In this document: positions 1,801-49,545 of the stretch, one piece after another | How the letters are laid out: each line of letters opens with the position of its first letter | Numbering within the stretch: the first letter of the stretch is position 1 | Assembly (NCBI GenBank): GCA_002189035.1 | Contig: NEEC01000020.1 | Coordinates: 868,001 to 932,000 of the forward strand | Direction of reading: 5' to 3' | Origin: Utricularia gibba | Lineage: Eukaryota; Plantae; Magnoliophyta | Length of the DNA stretch: 64,000 nucleotides | Made by a program: the position numbers and the translations under genes | The notes under the pieces: model-generated | What the model was told of the DNA's origin: nothing | The model's input: the letters and a program-made list of their open reading frames with translations, nothing else | Database searches by the model: none

Positions 1801-2779
1801 TGTCTTGTTAGAGATTGGATGAATAGGAAGTGGGTAAAAATTATTTGTATCATTTATCTATGACTTTAAAAACTGTTCTTTTATAGATGAAATTACAACA
1901 GCCAGATTCACATTTCTCACGCTTCTAACACTTGTCGAACTTTAGTATCATAAAATAACAAAGACTATGTCTTGTCTTACGCCAATGCTACGCATGATTA
2001 TGCTGCTTGTGTTGTCTGCATGCAGACACTTCCTCCCTCTCTTCATTTTGAGCTAAACCCTAAATGTTGTATGCCGCCACATATGTAATGTGTTAGCCAT
2101 TTTGGACCAAATTCATATTTGAAGTGTCGGGAGTTCGTTCTGTTCATCAGTTCTCATCGTTGAAGTTCTATCACTTCCATCATCATTTCATCTTTTTCTT
2201 TGGAAAGTAATGAATGGTGAGCCTGAGTCTGTTTAAGAGAAACACACAGTAATAACAATTTGACATTTCTCACAATACAGTAGTGAGAAGTTAACCAGAT
2301 TTCTAATACACTCCGGCTGGGAGTTTTTACCAAATCCACCAACTGTAAAAAAACCTACTTCCAAAATCACCTACTATGTGCATCTCAACTTTAATGTGTG
2401 TCAAAGCCACCCATACTACAGATTTTCTTTTTCATTTTTGAATTTCTTTTTGACAACATATTTTAATACTATTATATTTTTTACAAAAAAATAAAAATAT
2501 ATTATATTCGTTTTGCAAATATTGTAACAAATATTATTAAAATATCTTTTTTAGAATTCAAAAATTATATTAAATAAAAAAATCAAATTAAATTTTTGAA
2601 AATGTATATTTTATTTAATTATTATATATTCAAAAATATATACAATTAAACAATGGAAAAATAAATAATTTAAACAAAATGAAAAATCAAATTATATTAT
2701 ATATTCTTTTATAAATAATAAATCAAATTAAAAATCATAAATATCGTTTCATTTAACTTTTTCATGTTAATATTTTTTA

Positions 2780-3490
2780 TTTAGGTTGATCACTATAATT
2801 CATTAATTATAGTTATCAGAAATAAAAAAATATAAAGAAAACAACAATTACATATTTATGTCGATCACTACAATTTATTAATTACAGTTATTAGAAATGA
2901 AACTAATATAAAGAAAATAATAATTACATATTTCTTCCAATCACCACAATTCATCAATTACAGTTATCAGAAATAAAATTAATATAAACAAAATAATAAT
3001 TGTCTATTTCTAACGATCATTGTAATCATCAATTATAGTTACCACAAATAAAAGTAATATAAGAAAAACCATAATCGTTTATTTATGTCAATCACTATAA
3101 TTCATCAATTACAGTGATTAGAAAACATGGTGATAATAGTCTATTAAGCAAAAGTGTTCCGAACAAGCATAAAAGAGAAAATAAGAATTACTCGAGCAAT
3201 AGTTTGTATCTTTAAATTTTACGATCACCGTAATTAGCGATTACAGTTACCAGAATTGAAAGTAATATAAGGAAATGATAACCTGTTTCTACGGATCAAC
3301 GTAATCATCAGTTACTAGAGAAAATAATTATAATACTTTATTAAGCAAAACGATGATTACCTATTTCTGCGGATCATCGTAATCATCAATTACAATTCTC
3401 AGAGAATATGCTTATAGTATTCTACCAAGCAAAATGATGATTATCTATTTCTGCCGATCACCGTAATCATCAGTTACAGTTACTAGATAA
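2780..3490 (+). repeat. Left subterminal tandem array of the MULE (~55-65 bp unit, roughly 9-10 degenerate copies)
   Basis: Recurrent unit of the form GATCACTACAATTCATCAATTACAGTTATCAGAAATAAAAGTAATATAAAGAAAA. It is the reverse complement of the array at 9895-10460. Confidence 0.85.
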
Positions 3491-3540
3491 CAATAAAGCA
3501 AAAGTGCTCCTAATATGCATAATGAAATAGAAAATGAGAA

Positions 3541-5321
3541 TTACTCTACTAATGCTTTGTAATACTCCCAATCTAGATGGTCTTCATTCATTGGGGCTTG
3601 ACCAATACGAAAATCACGCACAAAGGATGACACATCAAATGCATCTATAAGTACTTCAAGAAAAGTCTTCATCTCAGCCCCTTTCATAAAAGATGAATCT
3701 TTTTTATCATCCGTGTGCTTGTAAGAGTATGGAAATGTGGCATTGTCAATCTATTTGAGAATCAGTAGACTATAATTTAAACTAAAAAAATAAAATTTAA
3801 CTTATGAAATTTTTAACTAAAATTATTACCGGATTTGTTATAGACTTGTATGATGAATCATCTACCAACAAGGTGTTATCATGTGTATACCGGCCATGAA
3901 AAGCATCATACTCCTATATTTTTCGCAACTCTTTCAGCAAAACCATACTTGCTGGCTTCTTGAGGACTCGAAGGTTTGTGGTGGCGCATTTCGTTCCATC
4001 TCATATGAATGCCAAATTTGACATCTTCTCGCCAAACATCCAATTAATGACTTGGTTTAGTTGTGCACTGTTACAAAAAGAATAACATGTAAAACATATA
4101 TATAAAAAAGATAATATAATATTTTGTATGTTACCCTCCACGTGACGACCATAGTGCAACATCAAAATGTTGCATACACCATTCCATAAACTCCCTAGCA
4201 TTTGGTCTTAGAAACACTTAAAATATAACATATGCAATAAAGTCAAGTTAATAAATTAGCAACTAACTATATGTTGCAAATGTGTGAAATACTAAATAAA
4301 TACTATACCTGCTCGCCCATAAATCCACTTATGTGGACGCCCTTTGATGGTTGATGATGAATGAAAAATAATATCATCAAAAATGCCATTGACGTCAAAT
4401 ACTACTAATTTCTGAACCGTTGGAATATGACAACTTGATTCACAGAAAGAAGGCCATTTGGATTGATATCACTTTAGTTGTTGCTTCAATGCCTCATTTT
4501 CAGATGCCAAATCATTTGTTTCATTGTCAACCGCCACATCTTCGTGTAAATTATCAACATCATTTCCACTTTGATCATCCACATTATCATCCTTCTTTGT
4601 AATCCTTTTTTTCCCACACCAAAACTTGGCTGTGCCTCAGATTCTAAAGATGGGAAGTACGATTGTAGTCAATGATCTAGTTTGTCCTTTAAAAAAAGCA
4701 ATGAATTCATCAACGACATCCCTTAGTAACATTTCAACACCTAAAAGTAAGCATAAGTAAATTAGACCAATAAAATCAAAACAATTCTTAAAAAAGAACA
4801 TAGTATAAAAAATTATTTAACGCATAAAATACATTGTGGTTTTCTAATAAGATGAGAATTTGGAAGTGTGCGTTGGAAATCATTTGGTAAATTTATACAA
4901 AACTTGTCCACCAACTATCATAGCCACTTCGTAGACCTTTCACTAATTTAATTGTAGACATACCCTTTATCACATAATTTGATGAATCCTTTATTTTACT
5001 ACACATGATCACAACAAAGAAAATAGGAAATTTTAGAGGAATGCTTTCCTCACAAGCAATGTAAACCCATGCCAATATATATGCCACTCACTTAGGAGTC
5101 AAATGTGAAAATGGAATTTGAAGGCATGTCAAAACTTGCAACATAAATAGTACCATTGGCACACGCAAGCCACATCTAAGGTGCTCAGTGGTGATAGCAA
5201 AACTCCTAGGACTAACACGTTTTGGATTATCACCAACGATCTCTTCATCCTCTTCCTTATCCCACAATTGATATTCAGCAGGAATATTGAATCGAAGCCT
5301 CAACTTTTCTGATGTGTTCAT
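3541..5321 (-). pseudogene. MULE cargo gene: Transposase_28-like N-terminal domain + acidic linker + FCP1/NIF-like (HAD) phosphatase domain; five exons, disabled by stops and one frameshift
   Basis: Exons 5321-4833, 4740-4309, 4216-4135, 4067-3830 and 3750-3541 have GT-AG boundaries and consistent phase in the phosphatase part. N-terminus: KLRLRFNIP..LRCGLRVPM..LQVLTCLQIPFSHLTPK*VAYILAWVYIA..LVKGLRSGYDSWWTSFV. Phosphatase: KLVVFDVNGIFDDII / VFLRPNAREFMEWCMQHFDVALWSSR / LLKELRKI*E..RYTHDNTLLVDDSSYKSITNP / NATFPYSY..IGQAPMNEDHLDWEYY. Stops at 5088-90, 4893-95 (with frameshift), 4637-39, 4469-71, 4001-03 and 3914-16. Confidence 0.85.
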
Positions 5322-5359
5322 CTCTGCATAAAGAACAATGAAAATGGATACTTTCAAAT

Positions 5360-5910
5360 CCATAAACTGTGATGAAAGCATTTCAGTGACTAAAATTTCA
5401 TAATAAAATAAATTTCGTATAATTTCATAGCCACACACCGTAATGAAAGCATTACAGTGACTAAAATTTCATAGCCACACACCGCAATGAAGGCATTACA
5501 ACGACTAAAATTTTACAATAAAATAAACTTCACATAGTTTTATAGTCACACATCACAATGAAAGAGATACAGTGACTAAAATGTCATAATAAAATCAACT
5601 ACACATAATTTCATGACAACACACCACAATAAAAGAGATATAGTGAATAAAATATCACAATAAAATAAATTTCTCATAATTTCATAGCCACACACCGCAA
5701 TGATTGCATTACAGTGACTAAAATTTCACAATAAAATAAATTTCGCATACTTTCAAAGCCACACACCACAATGAACATATTATAGTGATGAAAAATACAA
5801 AACAAAAAAACATCTGCATAAAGCCACGCACTGCAGTGAACGAATTACGATGACTATAAATCCAAAATATAATAAACATATGCATACTTTCAGAGCCACG
5901 CACCGCAATT
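5360..5910 (+). repeat. Internal tandem array (~70-73 bp unit, ~7-8 copies, decaying to ~6180) in the probable first intron of the cargo gene
   Basis: Unit AAAGCATTACAGTGACTAAAATTTCATAATAAAATAAATTTCGTATAATTTCATAGCCACACACCGCAATG repeats from ~5377. A minus-strand donor at 6235 (AACAG|GTATG) and an acceptor at 5324 (TATGCAG|) bracket it. Confidence 0.8.
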
Positions 5911-6554: not shown

Positions 6555-7129
6555 CCCTAAATCCTACAAATCCATATGATTAATGTTTTGAAGATGGGAT
6601 TAAAAAATATGATCATATATTGAACATAGTTATGAATTACATATGATTTGCAACTTATTACAATTTTTTTTACATACATGAATAAGATTCAAAAAAATGT
6701 GAAATAAATGTGTATGTAGTGTTTTAGATGTAATAATGAGAATGTATTTCATTGTGAAAAATTCTTTGATTTCGATTTTTTTTACTCGAAAAATAGGAAA
6801 AATATACATATATACTTAATCACACGTTTTCAGGTTGTTAAACATAGTAAATCTTAATTAATTTGAGTAATTTTGATTATATTTTTGGATGCTCATTGGT
6901 TTCTCCATTGCGGTGTGCCGCCTATATTCCATTATTAGCAGACAACACAGACAGCTACATGTTCCAAGATCAATAAAGTCTACTGATTTGTGTTTCAATG
7001 TTTTGGACTCACATGCCTCAATCACATGACCGAATTGTTCAAATTTAAAGGCTTTTGAAAACCATTCTTTCATCCTTCTCCAAAACCTCATCTTCTTGCA
7101 ACCTCATTCTTACATATCTCTCTATTTGG

Positions 7130-9864
7130 ATGGCTTTCAGATCTTTCTCATGCAAGGTCTTCTTTGGAGATCAAATCTATAATTACGGGAATTACGTAAG
7201 TTATAGTGTGGCACCAATCCAATTTTTTCAGTCAGATGCCGATATTTCATTAGAAGAATTAAAAGCAAGGTTATATGAGATTGTTCAATTGTCTTCTTCA
7301 AGGTTCAATCTTAGATTATCAGCCCAATTTTTTGATGTTGTGACTAGAGAAACGATGTATTTGAATTTAGAGATACAGAATAACCTGGATTATCTTCATG
7401 TACCTAACCATGTTATTGCTCCGGTGGATTTATTTGTGGAATACGACCCATTTTTTTCAAAAGAACCTCACTCACAAATTAGAGACAACGGTAATGACTA
7501 TTTCTTTCTTGTAAATTTCGAAATTATATATGTTTTTTTTAATTTTATGTTATTCTATTTTCCTATAGATGAATATATGGATTATGATTTCGGTCCAGTC
7601 CAAAATATTGATGGCGATTCATTTATGTAATTCACTAATGAAAATGAGGTTCCCGATATTGATCATACTCCTCAAAACTCAAAAGGCGAAGAGAATGTGC
7701 TTGAAGGAAACGCAAGTTGTGATTCGGAATGGTTTCCTAACTTAGGTTTACATGATATAGAGGAAGAATCGAGTAATCATGGAGTATACACACATCAATA
7801 TGAATCGAGATTCAAGGAAGGTGATCTATTTGAAGATAAAGAAGATTTTCGAAGACAAGTTAGAGAATTTTCCATTGAAATTGGAAAGGAGTTCACTGTT
7901 GGTGACACTGAGCTTAGAGTCTTGGAGATGTATTGCAAATAACGTGACATTCAAAATTGTCACTGAAGGATTCGCGCAGTTCATTATAAACAATTGGGAA
8001 AATGGAAGATCTCAAAGCTTATTGAGCCTCACACATGCAAGCGGCAGGGGGCGGGATTCTTTTATCACAGAAACATCAATCATGATTATATCTCTGAGAT
8101 TGCCAAGCCATATATTGAAGTAGACATTGGGACCAAAGTGTCAACTATTATTGCAGCTGTGTTGGATAGAACTAGTTATGAAGTACCGTACAAACGTGCA
8201 TGGTATGGAATGCGAAAGGCATTTGAGAAGGTGTATGACACATGGGAGGAATCAATAAAGAAACTTCCAGCTTTCTTAAATGAAGTTGCCTTACAAAATC
8301 TAGGCACCGTAATCCAATGGAGGAATAAGGAAGATGGAGTCACATTGCACTATTACTTCTGGGCGTTTGGACCATGTATACATGCCTACCAGCACACCCG
8401 TCCGGTTATTTCAGTCGATGCAATGCACTTGTATATGACATATAGGCACAAAATGCTCATTGCGATGACCGCTCTCAATGTGGAAAGATTTTGCCGCTTG
8501 CCTTTGCCATAGTAGATGAAGAAACTAATGCTTCTTGGCTATGGTTTCTAGAGCTAGTGGGAACTTACATTGCTTTGGGAAAACCCACGTGCTTGATTTC
8601 TGATAGATGTGACTCTATTCGAAAGGCAGCAATCAGAGTTACAGCATTCAGTGAAGAATTTGGAGGATGTCATCGCTATTGCTTTCGAATTTTCGAACAA
8701 ATTTCTTTGACAGATTTAAATGTGAGCCGGTTCGAACGTTATTCCTTAAAGCATCATTCACCGGGTACGTGGAGAAATTCTATGATTATGTGGAAGAGCT
8801 TAGAATGATAAATATCGTGGCTTGGAACTACTTAATAAATGTTCCTCCCGAGGCTTGGACAATATCTCAAGATGGTGGTCGAAGATATGGAACAATGACT
8901 ACCAATCAAATTGAAGAAATGAACGGTGTTTTGAAAGGAGCACGACATCTCCCACTTATGGCATTGGCTCAGGTATGATTAATTTGTGTTGTGTTTTAAA
9001 TTTAACGAAAATTTTGTAATAACATGTAGGTTATATTTGCTCGATGCAAAAAGTATATTTCAGAAGGTTTGGAGTTGGGACTAGAGGCACAAAGGAAGAA
9101 TCAAGTCCTTTCAATACAAGCGCAACGATTGTTTGATCATTGGGACAAGTTTCATCCTTATTCAAGAGTGGAGATTTATGATCGCTACGAAATGATAGTT
9201 CATGTAATCACCCGAAGGAAAGCAAATGGGAAAGATAACGTTTGTGTGGTGTGCATCAAGGAGAGCAAATGCACGTGCTGGTAAAATTATGGAATACCAT
9301 GCTCACATGCACAACAAGTTAGACTATAATTTAATAATGTTCATTTATTCAATATGAAAGACATGTTTATTTCAGGCATGCAAGAGACTTGAAGTTGATT
9401 CAAGACAATATGTGGATCCCATACACTTACAACAACATTCGTTGAAAGCATACTAGGTCCAATTCCATCCACTTCGAACAGAGAGACATTGGCAAGCAAC
9501 AATGTCTCTCATTCATGATCCTACACGTAAAAAGGTGATTAGACATGGTCGTACACGTAGTTCACGATATAGGATGAATATGGATAGGGGAAGGAGCACA
9601 GGAAGGAGAAGTGGACATAGTGGAAGACCAAGAGTTTCACAAGATACAGCTTCACCTGCACATAGTCCACCTCAGAGCCATCGAGTATCTATTGATGTAC
9701 CATATCACCGTGATTTCGAAGGTGTTTCTCAACAACCACGATCATCTCTTCAAGAACGACCTCAGGGTATGAACACTAGTATTGATCTTCCTTGCTCGTC
9801 TACTCAACAGCCTAGGAAGCAGAAGTCACTTATGCGTAAATTTTTTGAGTCGTTTATGAAATAA
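7130..9864 (+). pseudogene. MuDR/MULE transposase (PB1-like N-terminus, MuDR DNA-binding domain, MULE catalytic domain, SWIM finger), disabled
   Basis: Motifs FKEGDLFEDKEDFRRQVREFSI..KLIEPHTC; YYFWAFGPCIHAY..RPVISVDAMHL; LPLAFAIVDEETNASWLWFL..LISDR; HRYC; SWIM-like KCTCW*NYGIPCSHA. Introns at ~7491-7568, ~8973-9029 and ~9320-9375. In-frame stops (e.g. 7628, 7940, 9282) and frameshifts near 8490 and 8680. Confidence 0.93.
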
Positions 9865-9894: not shown

Positions 9895-10460
9895 TTTGTC
9901 TGGTAACTGTAATTGATGAATTACAGTGATCGGCATAATTATGCAATTATCGTTTTCTTTATATTACTTTTGTTCTTGGTAACTATAATTGATGATTATA
10001 AGGATTGGAAAAAATAAACAATTTTCGTTTTGGTTACATTCATTTCTGGTAACTGTAATTGATGATTATAGGGATTGAAAAAATAAACAATTTTCGTTTT
10101 GCTTATATTACTTTCATTTCTGATAACTGTAATTGATGATTACAGGGATTGAAAAAAATAAACAATTTTCGTTTTGTTTATATTACTTTTATTTCTAGTA
10201 ACTGTAATTGATGAATTACAGTGATTGCCAGAAATAAGTAATTGTCATTTTCTTTATATTACTTTCATTTTGGGTAACTGTAATTAATGATTATAGAGAT
10301 TGAAAAAAATAAACAATTTTCGTTTTGCTTTTATTACTTTTATTTATGGTAACTGTAATTCATGATTACAGTGATTGTAAAAAATAGAGAATTATCGTAT
10401 TACTTATATTACTTTCATTTCTGGTAATTGTAATTGATGAATTGTAGTGATTGGTCAACA
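9895..10460 (-). repeat. Right subterminal tandem array of the MULE (~60-65 bp unit, ~9 copies), inverted relative to the left array
   Basis: Recurrent TTTTCGTTTTGCTTATATTACTTTCATTTCTGGTAACTGTAATTGATGA(A)TTACAG(T/G)GATTG, the reverse complement of the 2780-3490 unit. Confidence 0.85.
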
Positions 10461-11437
10461 TAAATTAACATATGTAAAATTGAAATACAATTAGCATATA
10501 GTAAAACATGAATTCTATTATTGTATTATAAAAAAAATCGACACATTATAAATATATATGTATTATAATGATTCATATAAAATATATCTTTGTATTTGTT
10601 CAAAAAAATCGAATATCTTATGGAATATTATAAATATAAATATTATATTTTGTTATTATTTTAAAATTATTGTACATTTTTAGTAACTTTAATAAATTAT
10701 TACGATGCTTGAAAATCTTGAACACTGTAATTTATATTGTAGTCATCAATTTCAATATAAATTATTATATATAAAATTTGTTTTCATTAATCGAAATATA
10801 ATTATAATATATAGGAAAACATGATTTATATTATTATATGTTCAAAAATAATGATACATATAATATATATGTATTATATTTATAATTTAAAAAAAACGTA
10901 AATATCTTGATGAATATTAGAAATATAAATATGTGTATTTTTTATTTTAAAATTATACAATTATAATTATGAGTAATTTTTTAAAAATATTTTATTAATT
11001 AATTAGTTTGAATGACATAAACAGTGTTTTAAAAAAAATTTGACATATTTATAACAGAAATTATATTATTTAAATGTATATATTTATTATATTTAAATGT
11101 ATACAATATCTAAAAATAAAAATAATTCAAAAAAGAAAAGAAAAAATTAGGATGAATGGTTTTATACAAATAATACACACAATGGATGATTTTGGAATTC
11201 ATTTTTTTGCAGTGGTTGGTTTTGAAAATCACCCCTCCGACTGGCCGGTTGGCCGGTTTACAGAAACTGGCAGTTCAGCAACAGCACTTTAACACATATG
11301 TTCACATTTCACAGCAACCAACATACAGGTACGTCGCTTGATTTGGAGCAGCTGCAAATTAAGATCTCACCAGGCAACAAGGGTGATGCTTGCTGCTTTG
11401 CTCCTCCTTTTGCCCCATCTGATTCCCCGCCTCATCA

Positions 11438-13603
11438 TCACCGATGGTGGCGAGAGTTCTTCCTCACAGGTTTTGTGGCTTCTGTTTTCAAGCCTGGCTG
11501 CCGGACTTTCACCCCTCGTATCATCTGCACAAAGATTACAATGATCCAATATCCCTCTTGATGCAACACAGGAAAAAGAACTAACATATTTGCCACATTT
11601 AGTGTCTGAGTAGATCACTATGAAATCCCCTTCCTGCAGTCCATTCATCCTCACAAAATCTCCTGTATATGTATGATAAACATGGAGTTCATCCAACCAA
11701 GATATGTAACAAGAAACACGATGAATTTGTGTGCATACCCGTGTTCTCTAGTAGGTACATTCTACTCTTGTTGTTCGGCCAAAACCTGGAATCCAACAAT
11801 CGATATTCAGCTTCAAATGTACTTGTTTGATTCAATTTTTCCGACTCTACCTTTTTATTCCATGTAAAACTCAAGCCAGAACTAAAAAGTGTACTTGGGT
11901 ATCAAAACAAGTACCGGTAACGCATTTTCCATACACGAGAGGTTCCAATATCTTCCATTGCAATGGAGATTCCGTCTCTGGATTCCAGCTCGGGAAGATG
12001 GCTTTCAGCTTCCCTCTAGCACCACATTTTCAATTTGATCAACCCAGATCGTCTGTGTAATTGCAGCACAACAACATAGAAGAAAGTCAAGCAAGTAAGT
12101 ACCTTCGGCAGCACAATCCTCCCCAGATTACCCACATCACTTTGCTTCAACACCTTCTGCAGCAAAAACTTCAAATTCTTCTCCGTTTTCCATCCCTAAA
12201 ACCAAGCCCAGCGACATGCTTAGCCAATGCGCTAACTTCTCAAACGAAAAACGCAAATTCATGTAAGCATTAGAGTAACAAAGCACCAAACCTGCGGGAA
12301 TGGGCGCTCGCCGTAGGGCTGATCACCGCCGTGATCACCTGCGAACATCGGATCCAACGAAGGGCAGCCTATCGCAGCCCCCGGATCAGAACAGTTTCCA
12401 GTAGACCAGTGAGCCCAGTTGACCGACTGATCACCAAGTTCATCATCACCGTGCAATAGAGATGGATCATTCAATTGGATAGGGTTGTGGCTGGAGCCTT
12501 CGGTGCAACGGTGATTATGCGAATGCACCTTCCTTTGTCTTGCCATTCTTTTCTTCCGAGCCTCCTTCGTTGCCGAGGACCCTAATCTCGCCAATCCCTC
12601 AGCATTTGCACCATGGATCACTTGATGAAAAGGATGATTACCGTACAACAAACCTTGTTGATTGCTGATGAAGCTGGAATTCTCCTGGAAAATGCCAAAT
12701 TGAGGCGGCATCTGCCACACTGATGGGGAATAATCAGTCACTTGTTGATAATTCTCATACGGGTCGCCGTTAAATCCGGGTGTGATCAACGGCAGCGGTG
12801 GCGGCGCCGGGTGTATCGGCGTGATGTAGGGATTAGGATTGGGATCGGGATAAGGAGAATCTGGGTTTTGAAAAAAGTTGAGATCTTGGGACGCTTCGCC
12901 CCGTTTCTTGTGAAGCTGGTGCTGCTCAACCCAATCGAGGATGAGTTTAAGAAGCTGTTTTTTACCTTCTTTGTCGCTTCCCAGACGCCTGGAAGCGGAC
13001 TCGATAGTGGATCTTTTGAGTTTGATGCTTCTCATGTCCTCCGCCGAAATGCAATCCTTGTTCTGTTTCAGCCAGTTCAAGAAAATCGCCGCGAGCTCGG
13101 AGTTGCCGTCAAGGAAACTCAGACCCTCGTTCCCTTCATCGTATGGTGCGACCCTGGTTTCAGGTTGGTGTTCCCCAATCAACTCCTGAATGCTCTCATT
13201 CTGGAAAACAGAAGAGGGATCCCACATTTCATCGCAATCCATATACCCGAGATTCTGCGGCGGCGGCGGCGCGCTGTGTATAGCTGTGGTCTGCCCCGAA
13301 ATCTCTTCCGGGTCGGACTTCAACAAAACCCACGAGGCGGCAGAGGAGGAGGAAGAAGAAGAAGTGGTAACCGCCGCTTTGCCCGGCCCCGGCGCCGGCG
13401 AGGAGGATGAGGATGAGGATGAGGAAGACACATAGGGAAACTCCGGTAGAGGTGGGAACCCGGCGTCGTAGAAAAAGGAAGCGTCATCCACCCCAAGCAG
13501 ACCGTCATCTCCCCCGCCCCACAAACCGTCCACGTGATCCCCGACCAACGCGCCACCATCCCCCGCCCCCCGGACACGCACCGATTCCCCCAGTGTCACT
13601 CAT
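11438..13603 (-). CDS. ABI3: ABI3/VP1 B3 transcription factor, six exons; apparent +1 frameshift in a G-run near the start
   Basis: Exons 13603-12292, 12195-12103 (93 nt), 12015-11915 (101), 11785-11739 (47), 11662-11586 (77) and 11524-11438, all GT-AG and matching the ABI3 exon-size pattern. Domains: A1 [15 protein letters not shown]1 [30 protein letters not shown]2 [17 protein letters not shown]3 [45 protein letters not shown]. Confidence 0.93.
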
Positions 13604-17880: not shown

Positions 17881-20800
17881 CTAACAAGCAAAAGCATACC
17901 TGTTGCTAATCCCACCAGCCAATTCAACAGCGATCTCCTGCATGAGAGCCTCTACCAGACTCCCTGCAATCTCCTTCTTCACATCGTTGATCTCCATTTT
18001 CAACTGATCCATCCACCAGGATCCCACAACTTCATCCTTCACCGCCATCTCCATCCCTGCACCACCATCGTCGTCGTCATCATTTTCACCATCACCTGAA
18101 ACCCATCGAGCTTCACTGGAGAACCATGAGCTGATAAGGGCAAGAACGTTGTCCCCTAGGGGAGATTTTGCACTTGCAACTTTGTCTCCGATGTAGCTGA
18201 ACTGGGTTCTGGTTATTTGCATCAATGCTGCATTTACGGAATCATACACGAGCTTCCGAGTTGATCGGTTTTGCCTTCTGTTGGCCTCATATGGCATCTC
18301 CTTGTCATTTAGATGGACATATTTTTCCCCAAGTGATGGATCCAAAGGACTCTCCGATGAATGCCAACTTTCAATGCCGTAGGTAGGGAGTGCTACATCC
18401 TGCAGACCAGAAACGGATAACAATGTTTTGGCTAACATCATCCAGTCCGGTCCGATGTTGCTGTCTTGAGTTGAGATGTGGTGCGTTGCGGGGTGAGATG
18501 TTGCAGTGTCTGCATACATATCATCTGACGATATGGTGCGAGGAACGGTTCCGATTGCCGGTGATTTTCCAATTAAGTTAGGTTCACATGAACTTGGAAA
18601 CAGCCTAGCACCTGAATACAAAATAGCTGGAATGTCATGGCAAGATTGAAGATGTCAAGCAAATGCCAACAGAGAGCTGTATACAAAGTGACAGAACTTG
18701 TACCCCGTTGATTTGGCTTTAAATACTGTGGACGAGCTCTAGCCATACATTCATCTACAAACTGTGGATCCCATACTGGACCTGGCTGTTTCTGGTTGTC
18801 AGCACGGCCTCCATACTGCAGAAGTTGATGAAAACGTTAACTAAAGGTGATGGATTCTCAGTATGAGCAAAATATCCCATGCATGCCTATCAATCCTAAC
18901 TTTCACAAATACTGCATTGTTAATTTGAAGCAATGGGATTAGATATCCGCATCATAACAGCAACCAAGTTGTATGAAAGAATATTGTGATTTTACCATGG
19001 GAGGTAGCATAGCCAAGTTGCCAATTCGGGCAGGGAATAGTTGGTTTGATGACCTCTGCACAGCTTTGTTGAGTGGCTTGGAAGAGGGTGCTAAGGTTTT
19101 GTTGCCAAGGTCATTGGAAAAAGAGAGATTATCATATTTGATGAAGGCTTTCTCCAAACCAGATGCTCTGCTTCCGGAAGAAAATAAACGAGACAGCATC
19201 CCCTTGAATGACACTTTTCCAGTTCTTGTTTTACCTTCTTCCATGCCTAAATCCACTCTGGTATGGAACTCAGCGGAAGAGACAGGAAGGGGTTTTGACC
19301 TGATGAGGTTTCTGGAAGATGGATCTGAATGCCCCTCCATTTTTATTTGATGAAATAAACGAGGCTTTGAATGCTTCACTTCTGGACAAGTACCTTTTTC
19401 ATCATCCAGATTAGGAGCAGGTGACCTTCTTGCTTCAGAAACAGCAAGCATTTCACCTAATGACTTGGAACTTCTCCGGCTAAGCATCCGTTCATTGTGT
19501 GTTCCATCATATGTCAAAGTAGCCCATCTTTCAGAGAGGCGTTTTTTGGCTTCTTGGCAAACTGAATAATCTGGAGAATAAGATATCTGACTATACGAGG
19601 GAGAAGAGAAAGGACTACCAATTCTATTAGCATAATCCCAAGAGTGCCTAGGCAATGGAGACATATTGTCTGAATATCTGGTATGAACATCAGGAAAGAA
19701 TGAAGTATCATCACCCCTGTATTCACCGCAAGGGCCAGATGGAGTCAGTTTTTCCTCTCTGCACAGATGGCCAAGGTGAGGAACCATATTCTCCCTGGCT
19801 GCTTTTGCATCTTCCCTTGGTTCATGATTTTGTGCACTCTCCATGTTCTCAAAGAACATTTTCTCAAACAACTGCCTAGTTTGCTGCAATTGTGGAGAAC
19901 TGTGGAGCTTATCACCACTGGGTTTCACAGGCCCTGGTTTCAGAACCACTATTCGGGTTGGCGGGGCTGCATTTGCACAATGCTCCAAGCATGTAGAACA
20001 CGAACTTGGTTCTGGATGGATTATCTCTGAACATTTTTGACCAAAAACGGCACCCTTTTTCATATGAGCTCCATCCTTACCTATAGCGACAGGATGATTA
20101 TGGTTAGACAGAGCTGTTGCGGGTAAGAGGACTGTGATTCTCCTGTTATCAGGAGGAGGAACAGAATGCAGGCCATCAAGGTTCTCTGAGGCCAATGAAG
20201 TCCGTTCCTGGAGACACTTGAGAAACAAATCTTTGTTGGAAGTCAAGACTTCCAGTGCATCTTGAAACTGCCTAGAATGTCTGTTTCCATCTGTACACAA
20301 ATGCTTTGCTTCAGAGAATTTCTGCCGAACAAGAGCCATCCTTGGATCCTCTTCACGACCCCTCCTACATGGTGAGCTCCAGGACTGTCTCCCTGTTTCA
20401 TAAACATCCTTCAATACCTGCTGATCAGCTCGATTCACAAGTCCGTTCTGGGAACAACTTTGATGAGTTCTAGAACTGATTCCTTGCCCAGATGAATCTG
20501 GCTCCACTCTAGGAATGGCATCAAGTCCCATCAACTTGGCCACCAAGTTCGGTTGGCCGCTTCCAGTGTTAATTTCCTTTGACATCTCTTCTGCAATGAG
20601 TAACTTTATGGGCAGTTCACTTGATCTAGGTGCATGTGCACAAATGCTATTCAACTCAGACGCAACCTGAAAGCATCCCAGAAGCAAGAAAAATGATCAA
20701 AATCAAGTCAGCACACAACGAATGCTTAATAACGTGTTTTGGGGGCATGTTGAATACCTTTTTCTGTTCCAATGAACACATTCTTGAAGCATCTGAAACA

Positions 20801-47171: not shown

Positions 47172-49545
47172 TTACATTTGGGAGCTGTTTTCCTTGAGGC
47201 TTTCAGCAATTCTTCCCGATACACAGAGAGCAGTTGCTAGGATAGTGACCATGGGATTAACACCCACAGCACTAGGGAGAAGGCTTCCATCGCAAACGAA
47301 CAAATTCTCAGCTTCCCAGCTCTCCCCACGTTCATCTACTGCCCCTTCTTCTTCATTCTGCCCCATTCTGCAGCTTCCCATCTGATGAGCTGAGCCGAAA
47401 ATGTTCCAATACTTTGATTTTGCCTTCGGTCCTCCTGCAGGCGCTACACTGTCCAAAAACTCTTCCAGCTCTTCCTGTTCAGTTCCTTCGCACTTGATGC
47501 TTTGTCCATCGCTTCTGAATGTACCAACTTCGGTGGCTCCTGCAGCAATAAGCATCCGCAATGCTTGTCTGATCCCAGCCTTGAGCTTCTCTCTGTCGAC
47601 TTCGCTCACCCCATATTTTATTTGCTTCTCCTTCAGCACCTCCCCTGATCCTTCATCTCTGGCTAGCGCAAACAACACAGCTGTTCTTGAGTACTTTCTG
47701 ATGTGATCATCAAACTTGCTTCTTGATTCCCAGGGGAACATCGCAGCGAATGAAGCTGGCCCAAAGGATGGAGCCTCGATTATCGCTATGGTTTTCTTTG
47801 CTTCTGCAGACTTTACCTTGTGCACGGAGGTTATGATTCCTCCCTGGAAACTTTTCCCTTCGAGCCCTGATATTGATTCCGGGAAGTATCCCCACACAAA
47901 CAAAACTGGATGGAGATGAAGGTTCCTTCCTATGTTCTTGTTCTTCAGACCACTGGATATCATCAATGGTGGAGTGGAAAGAGATCCACTGGCAGATATC
48001 GCAACTCTGGATTCGATCACCAGTTTCTTCCCAATGTTGATGTTTTCAGCACTTGCCACAACTCCTGTGCATTTTCTTCTCCTACTCCGGCCATCACTCT
48101 CCAGAATGAACCTTTCTGCCCTGCAGCCTGTGATAATCACTGCTCCGTGGTTCACAGCATCGACTAGAAAAGTGGAATCTGTTCCCTTCTTGTCACCCCA
48201 CCTGCAACCGTAACCACAAGAACCACAGAAATGATCTGATGAAGAGTTCCTGGGCACGGTCTCCACTTCTAAGCCGAGTTTCTCACACCCCTTCCTGAGT
48301 ACTCGGTTCTGAAATCCTTCTTCATCACATTTGTCTGTAACACCTATTCGCTCGCAAACAGCATCCATCGCAGATTGGTATTCTTGGGAGTTGTATAGAG
48401 AAATCCTTTGTTCTCTGGACCATTCATGGAGGACATGATCAGGAGTTCTTATGCAAGCAGACCAGTTCACAGCGGAACCTCCACCAAGTGTTGATCCTGC
48501 AAAGATCATCATCTCACCATCTACAGTGGATAAAAGTCCCCCAGATTCGTATAGTTCGCGCAATGAAGGTCCTTCCAGCCCCGAATAATCCTCTGCAACG
48601 AAGTAGTTGCCTTTCTCAAGAACAACAACTTTGTAGCCTGCTTTTGCGAGCACTGCTGCAGCAACACCACCCCCACAACCAGATCCCACTATTACTACAT
48701 CGCATTTGACCTTGTAGGAATTTTCATATGAATCTTCTGTCACAGGTAAGCCTTTCTGAATCAAAGATTGTTTCAAAGATGACTCGTTACTATAGATGAG
48801 CTCTATTATTCCCTTCTCAAGTGGTCTTTCTTTCCCATTACTGTGCAGCCTTTTGACCTCTTCTACGTGGTAACCAACAGCTTCCCAAGATGGGTTCCTC
48901 GAATTCTCATCAATCTGGGTAACAAAACAAGTGTTATTGAGCGCAAGTGGGGTGTGGTTTTAGTTTCATAGATGAGTAAGAAAGAAACTGAGCGGCTACC
49001 CACCCTGGAAAAGAAGGAGTAAATGACCATGATCTTCAGAGCCAAAAAAGTAACTCTTAAAGGCAGAAAAGTTGCTTCCTTGCTCCATTTCTGAAGAATG
49101 GATTCCCTCTTTGTCAATGACAGATCTGAGAATTTATGCACAAACGGCCATTCCCCATCTAAACAGTCAAACCCACAGAGCAAAAGTGTTCCAAAAGTGC
49201 CTGAGAGGAGCCACAAAACTAACTTCACAACAAGAACGACTTCCGGTTTCCCCCTCTCAGCCAGCATCTCCGCCACCTGCAACACAAACTTCCCACTCCA
49301 GAAAGAAGAAATGGGAAGAAAAAAAAAATCGAGAACAAACAAACCTCTTGAGGGAAGACGGAAGCATTAGAAAGATTTGGATTGTGTTCATCATCAGAAA
49401 GAGGAGGAATTAGAGTTTCACAAATAGCAGCCAGGGCCTGGATCTGATTTGAAGAGAAGCCATGGTTGATAATGCTGCTGCCACGACTCTGCAACAAAGA
49501 ATGAGGCTGTGGTCGCCCTTCTTCTTTTTCCACACCCATACTCAT
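47172..49545 (-). CDS. Long-chain fatty alcohol oxidase (GMC oxidoreductase, FAO family), three exons
   Basis: Exons 49545(or 49539)-49345, 49276-49004 and 48914-47172 form one open frame. FAD motif [24 protein letters not shown], heme-type [36 protein letters not shown]. Confidence 0.93.

Follow-up and report, generated by a model that had tools for sequence, protein, structure and literature searches.

A pseudogene for a Transposase_28 and NIF-like fusion protein in a Mutator-like element of Utricularia gibba, probably a dead transposon accessory gene

A Mutator-like element (MULE) of Utricularia gibba contains, beside the remnants of its transposase gene, a spliced pseudogene whose product would have joined a Transposase_28 (TRP28)-like domain, through an acidic linker, to a NIF/FCP1-type HAD core. 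The pseudogene lies on the minus strand at positions 3541-5321 of the window, by which we mean the whole stretch of 64,000 nucleotides that was analyzed (contig NEEC01000020.1, 868,001 to 932,000 of the forward strand). On balance, the explanation that accounts best for the observations is that a high-copy MULE family has a second gene, of which this is a dead copy, and that in the progenitor of the family the intact product acted in trans for the transposon. Most accessory genes of transposons are poorly understood, and it is to this gap that a TRP28-NIF protein is relevant; the exceptions VANC and MURB revealed how elements escape, or negotiate with, silencing by their host. The fusion is probably an undescribed kind of transposon accessory gene, present here as a pseudogene. 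Its novelty, which a preliminary description made from the DNA alone had suspected, was borne out to the extent that the literature on Transposase_28/TRP28 or on NIF/FCP1 with MULEs or other TIR transposons yielded no description of the architecture. The accessory domains named in the main text of a 2025 survey of active plant TIR transposons include Zf-GRF, Peptidase_C48, NAM-associated, and PMD, and NIF is absent from that main text's accessory domains.

Structure of the gene

The minus strand between 3541 and 5321 contains only short stop-free pieces; spliced together, they form five exons separated by four GT-AG introns, as follows.

3541-5321, minus strand: accessory gene (pseudogene) of five exons, about 488 codons in its undeleted form, with a TRP28-like domain, an acidic linker, and a NIF-like HAD core
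4833-5321, minus strand: exon 1, with the ATG at 5321-5319; TRP28-like domain and a downstream W..F.V segment; donor CAAT/GTATTT, phase 1
4741-4832, minus strand: intron 1, 92 nt, GT..AG, phase 1
4309-4740, minus strand: exon 2; linker with an acidic, Asn/Asp-rich core (13 D/E in 45 amino acids) and the putative HAD motif I segment
4217-4308, minus strand: intron 2, 92 nt, GT..AG, phase 1
4135-4216, minus strand: exon 3, 28 amino acids; FLRP...ALWSS, the HAD motif II region, matched by Pfam NIF (positions 38-61) and by our own profile
4068-4134, minus strand: intron 3, 67 nt, GT..AG, phase 2
3830-4067, minus strand: exon 4; HAD motif III Lys (LLKELRK) and motif IV (LLVDDS)
3751-3829, minus strand: intron 4, 79 nt, GT..AG, phase 0
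3541-3750, minus strand: exon 5, the C-terminal part, with the stop codon at 3541-3543

All four GT..AG junctions fall at changes of reading frame, their phases are compatible, and the intron sizes are plant-like; the introns are 78-85% AT, compared with 63% for the exons. The spliced five-exon gene that had been proposed for this interval is therefore real. Its model is also supported by the NIF profile alignment described below, which remains in register over the junction of exons 3 and 4. Given 16 nt that are present in other copies, exon 1 most likely ends at the 4833 donor; a weak donor at 4904 (CAA/GTTTTG) was dropped in favor of it once the 16-nt gap was recognized. The coding length as found is 1448 nt, and adding the 16 nt seen in other copies brings it to 1464 nt, which is 488 codons. 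The lesions in the reading frame are these:

5088-5090, minus strand: in-frame TGA; TCA (Ser) in most other copies
4637-4639, minus strand: in-frame TGA; the state of other copies is absent from the listed differences
4469-4471, minus strand: in-frame TGA; TGG (Trp) in most other copies
4001-4003, minus strand: in-frame TGA; the state of other copies is absent from the listed differences
3914-3916, minus strand: in-frame TAG; TGG (Trp) in most other copies
4892-4894, minus strand: 16-nt gap relative to other family members, from contigs of DNA run X7; it shifts the frame inside exon 1 and creates a TAA at 4893-4895

Because 16 nt are missing at 4892-4894, this copy has a frameshift besides its five in-frame stops, and these stops and the single gap are the only disruptions of frame in the gene. 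Among the coding-sequence changes private to this copy, 26 are non-synonymous or nonsense and three are synonymous, counting only the listed majority differences, a ratio that fits free decay after insertion. With the transposase gene of the element also frameshifted, the earlier judgment that this copy is a pseudogene was correct.

The TRP28-like domain

Pfam was run on separate pieces of the gene. The half-domain upstream of the stop at 5088-5090 matched Transposase_28 (PF04195) with 20.6 bits (E = 5.4e-4), which is below the gathering score of 26.2; the match corresponds to 5094-5192 of the window and to positions 3-35 of the 69 in the profile, and it is cut off by that stop. The ESM Atlas cluster nearest to the TRP28 piece carries PF04195, with a score of 0.95 and 184 of 256 features shared. 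The conserved positions published for TRP28 are G21, P25, L34, P46, N47, and F55 (PMC11963269). The segment in this copy reads G-x3-P-x8-L-x11-P, exactly the spacing of the first four, and it has Lys and Trp, respectively, at the positions of N47 and F55. What had been described as an N-terminal domain of gypsy-associated type is thus Transposase_28-like by a sub-gathering Pfam match to a piece, by its Atlas cluster, and by residue spacing. The same piece found no match as a protein-homologue query, for which a length filter applied and the collections apparently lack the TE proteins of this plant. Around the gene, there are no LTR-retrotransposon genes, and its setting consists of MULE terminal arrays and a MULE transposase.

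The NIF-like domain

The 28 amino acids of exon 3 matched Pfam NIF over profile positions 38-61 with 16.9 bits (E = 5.3e-3; gathering score, 21.8, so the match is below it). We also made a NIF profile from 13 giant-virus genes that had been fetched with the degenerate pattern LDLDETLVH, ten of which were verified as Pfam NIF at 62-174 bits. Against this profile, the spliced translation, with an X set at each break, scored 31 bits (E = 1.5e-8 among 2001 sequences), and the best of 2000 shuffles reached 6.2 bits; an HMM check of the spliced product with this profile thus does find NIF. The alignment covers FLRP..ALWSS (motif II), LLKELRK (motif III), and LLVDDS (motif IV), and the residues that characterize these motifs (Ser, Lys, and Asp-Asp, respectively) fall on the corresponding profile columns. 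Exon 5, at the C-terminus, matches no profile by itself; single pieces of the gene found no NIF protein in the PDB, and the Atlas gave nothing usable for either the motif I piece or the C-terminal piece. A NIF alignment seeded with pieces of the window drew in giant-virus NIF proteins only, among the 120 matches listed. Giant-virus NIF proteins of the L001/L002 type (contigs L001-L013) have a motif II of the form RP..FL..cf..F.V.vWSAG rather than the canonical FTA, and this form is common to them and the transposon gene.

Motif I is a different matter, and the candidate for it is the following.

4385-4399, minus strand: putative HAD motif I, F-D-V-N-G, that is, D-x-N-x-G instead of D-x-D-x-T/V; assigned by position only

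The first Asp, the putative nucleophile, is kept in this candidate, and the second, general-acid Asp is replaced by Asn. The candidate was chosen for a hydrophobic strand and Asp pattern 31 amino acids from FLRP, and MAFFT puts the segment under LDLDETL; our own NIF profile gave it no support (-2.2 bits, rank 1121 of 3001, with shuffles scoring as well). A 58-amino-acid piece that includes it had an LRR-repeat protein as its sole match among protein representatives, which was discarded as spurious. The preliminary description had spoken of a complete FCP1-homology HAD domain and of a phosphatase of the CTD type. Because only motifs II to IV are supported and exon 5 is unmatched, both "complete HAD domain" and "phosphatase" are too strong: the domain assignment stands for motifs II to IV but not for motif I, which has neither profile support nor its second Asp, and for the same two reasons a CTD-type phosphatase is doubtful. 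From the Asn at the general-acid position and the failure of motif I in the profile search, the NIF part is more likely to have been a phospho-binding or attenuated module than a catalytically active enzyme.

The host element and its surroundings

The element that contains the gene is recognized from these features.

2778-3478, no strand: left terminal/subterminal tandem arrays, with 76-bp units at 2778-3124 and 84-bp units at 3275-3478; inverted relative to the right-end arrays; found with TRF
5350-5821, no strand: central tandem array of about five 71-bp units; intergenic, between the two divergent genes, its unit unlike those of the terminal arrays
7055-9864, plus strand: remnants of a MULE transposase, spread over several frames and interrupted by in-frame stops and, near 8470-8490 in the MULE domain, by a frameshift
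9899-10453, no strand: right terminal/subterminal tandem array with a 75-bp unit, inverted relative to the left arrays; found with TRF

The longest of the inverted pairs between the terminal arrays is 208 nt at 84% complementarity. The transposase piece, cut as it is by the frameshift, matched Pfam PF10551 with 26.6 bits (E = 8.2e-6; gathering score, 27.6). The accessory gene is on the minus strand and the transposase remnants are on the plus strand, and the divergent arrangement reported earlier was confirmed. It had also been said that the gene sits within TIRs and a target site duplication (TSD). It does lie inside the inverted terminal arrays, but no TSD could be confirmed: a search for duplications of 8-11 bp gave as its only exact match the 9-mer TTATAAATA, which is 60-90 bp beyond the arrays; the flanks are very AT-rich, and the match looks like chance.

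Two observations concern the neighborhood rather than the gene. In the central 71-bp array, contig depth is several-fold above that of the gene, and the number of units varies among contigs, with joints going back 69 or 99. About 1 kb to the right of the element is an ABI3/VP1-like gene (11367-13599, minus strand) with a B3-domain exon and a long N-terminal exon; the call was made by eye, the large exon being without a Pfam match. Because of the proximity of this gene, the MULE is considered to sit in gene-rich DNA. Other host genes nearby encode a DUF3741/DUF4378 protein with a VARLMGL motif (17884-20696, minus strand) and a GMC oxidoreductase (47175-48959, minus strand).

Other copies in the same organism

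Two DNA runs of the same organism from different studies, X1 and X7, were searched for relatives at a likeness threshold of 80%, and they contained 1836 and 439 contig pieces, respectively, at 80-99% identity to the gene, with all 30 bins covered. The search for further members therefore revealed a many-copy family in both studies. Contig identities to this copy extend from less than 90% to more than 99%, making the family old or diverse. At three of the five stops, most other copies read an amino acid instead (Ser at 5088-90, Trp at 4469-71, and Trp at 3914-16), and the accessory gene was thus probably intact in the progenitor of the family. For 4637-4639 and 4001-4003, no majority sense codon is listed, and other copies may have these two stops as well. 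C>T/G>A changes are in strong excess among the differences between copies, at 146 of 231 variable places in run X1 (window 3450-5450), which is typical of what is expected for methylated, silenced repeats.

In some contigs, 3564 is joined to 4834, 3799 to 5392, or 3906 to 5361, so that most of the accessory gene is missing; they represent deletion derivatives of the family. Metagenome and protein collections gave no relatives, and a piece of the transposase had no match as a protein-homologue query either. These collections apparently lack the TE proteins of this plant, and these negative results are uninformative.

Alternative explanations

The main rival supposes that a TRP28 piece from a retrotransposon and a host NIF gene with its introns were captured once in a master MULE and then amplified without ever serving the element. 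We think this unlikely, but it has more in its favor than the other alternatives. The evidence for an intact progenitor would be equally expected if one master had recently given rise to the copies in a burst; motif I, a catalytic motif, is degenerate; the private changes of this copy are almost all non-synonymous or nonsense; and two RNA-labelled runs (X11 and X12) gave no match to the gene, which is weak negative evidence. Set against these points is the nature of the cargo itself: a complete ORF of several exons, fused to a TE-specific domain in the same frame, within an element whose transposase marks it as autonomous in type. Furthermore, the reading frame and the four pairs of splice sites have persisted in a copy that is dead, even though its family is old or diverse.

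It is decidedly improbable that the MULE was invaded by another mobile unit to which the TRP28-NIF gene belongs, making the association of gene and MULE incidental. A separate tandem array does adjoin the 5' end of the gene; however, no inverted repeats or duplications bracket the gene within the element, the central array differs in its unit from the terminal arrays and shows no pairing with either of them, and the gene directly abuts the left subterminal array.

Least credible of all, and very improbable, is that the 3' half of exon 2 is a captured fragment of ribosomal protein eL21, leaving an N-terminally truncated NIF core in place of the "phosphatase": phmmer with the 58-amino-acid piece (window 4295-4468, minus strand) did find 23 eL21 sequences in the PDB (best E = 0.0047, 17 identities in 43 amino acids), and the motif I region of our NIF profile bears no resemblance to the piece, but the matches are to one family and count as one observation of borderline E among six PDB searches, the hydrophobic strand and Asp are at the right distance (31 amino acids from FLRP) for HAD motif I, and the match is probably due to chance because the family majority departs from this copy at matched positions 4333 and 4304 and is less like eL21 there, whereas descent from eL21 would predict the reverse.

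A possible accessory role

The second gene of a MULE family, dead in this copy, thus remains the preferred reading, and an accessory role for its product is plausible. The progenitor of the family would have carried the intact five-exon gene divergent from the transposase gene and transcribed out of the central intergenic region, and its product may have been an accessory protein comparable to VANC, MURB, or those of KAONASHI, acting in trans for the transposon. Recruitment to DNA or chromatin could have been the task of the TRP28 part, since DNA binding is predicted for TRP28 (PMC11963269). The NIF part, in turn, may have recognized phospho-Ser/Thr proteins; it retains the Asp of the putative nucleophile together with Ser in motif II, Lys in motif III, and Asp-Asp in motif IV. 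Because the general-acid position is occupied by Asn, it is more likely to have bound such proteins, or turned them over slowly, than to have dephosphorylated them efficiently. That the targets include Pol II or silencing proteins is pure inference.

A wider proposal is that TRP28-NIF proteins are a class of transposon accessory protein common to unrelated superfamilies, linked through TRP28 to Retand and acting on the host, not on a particular transposase; they might blunt silencing through binding or dephosphorylation of, for instance, silencing factors or the CTD-like repeats of Pol II/IV/V; this is speculative and we are inclined to doubt it. If the fusion was indeed a selected one, it would supply the first functional context for the TE-only TRP28 domain outside the Retand retrotransposons. 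In that case, one would also suspect plant DNA transposons of interfering with phospho-signalling on the machinery for transcription or silencing.

Comparison with known systems

The nearest relatives of the N-terminal domain are the TRP28 proteins of Retand, which are similarly borne by a TE and are alike by a sub-gathering Pfam match, by Atlas cluster, and in the spacing of conserved residues. The Retand TRP28 sequences are antisense ORFs of Ty3/gypsy LTR retrotransposons, confined to flowering plants, and the study that described them did not find TRP28 similarity in other known TEs (PMC11963269). In contrast, the domain reported here is in a DNA transposon, a MULE, and it belongs to a spliced gene in which it is fused to a NIF-like domain. 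With the NIF/FCP1 phosphatases (PF03031: SCP1/CTDSP, FCP1, plant CPL/SSP, and the giant-virus NIF proteins), the C-terminal part has in common the RP..F..ψWS(S/A) strand, the motif III Lys, and the ψψψDD of motif IV; it differs in its D-x-N-x-G motif I, in its fusion to a TE domain, and in being transposon-borne.

Pack-MULEs also have host-like coding sequence with introns between MULE termini, but they are non-autonomous and carry gene fragments, whereas this element has both a transposase, albeit broken, and a once full-length, multi-exon chimeric ORF. The view that the gene is no Pack-MULE scrap is upheld by this difference. A closer parallel is with mudrB of maize MuDR, VANB and VANC of the Arabidopsis VANDAL elements, and the ULP1-like proteases of KAONASHI: in each case, a second, non-transposase gene is present in a MULE of autonomous type, is amplified along with it, and may act in trans. 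The domains are nevertheless unrelated, and no Pfam match to Peptidase_C48, the KAONASHI type of cargo, was found in the gene pieces at E values up to 10. The two genes of MuDR are convergent from promoters in the TIRs, whereas the two described here diverge from an internal region.

Finally, MAIN and MAIL1, which act with PP7L, and the PMD-PP7 fusion MAIL3 (PMC7156037) resemble the TRP28-NIF gene in bringing together a TE-derived domain and a phosphatase-type domain that is perhaps catalytically atypical. They are domesticated, single-copy host genes that pair PMD with a PPP-type phosphatase, whereas here TRP28 is paired with a HAD-type domain in a multi-copy transposon; they provide a conceptual parallel for a role in chromatin or silencing.
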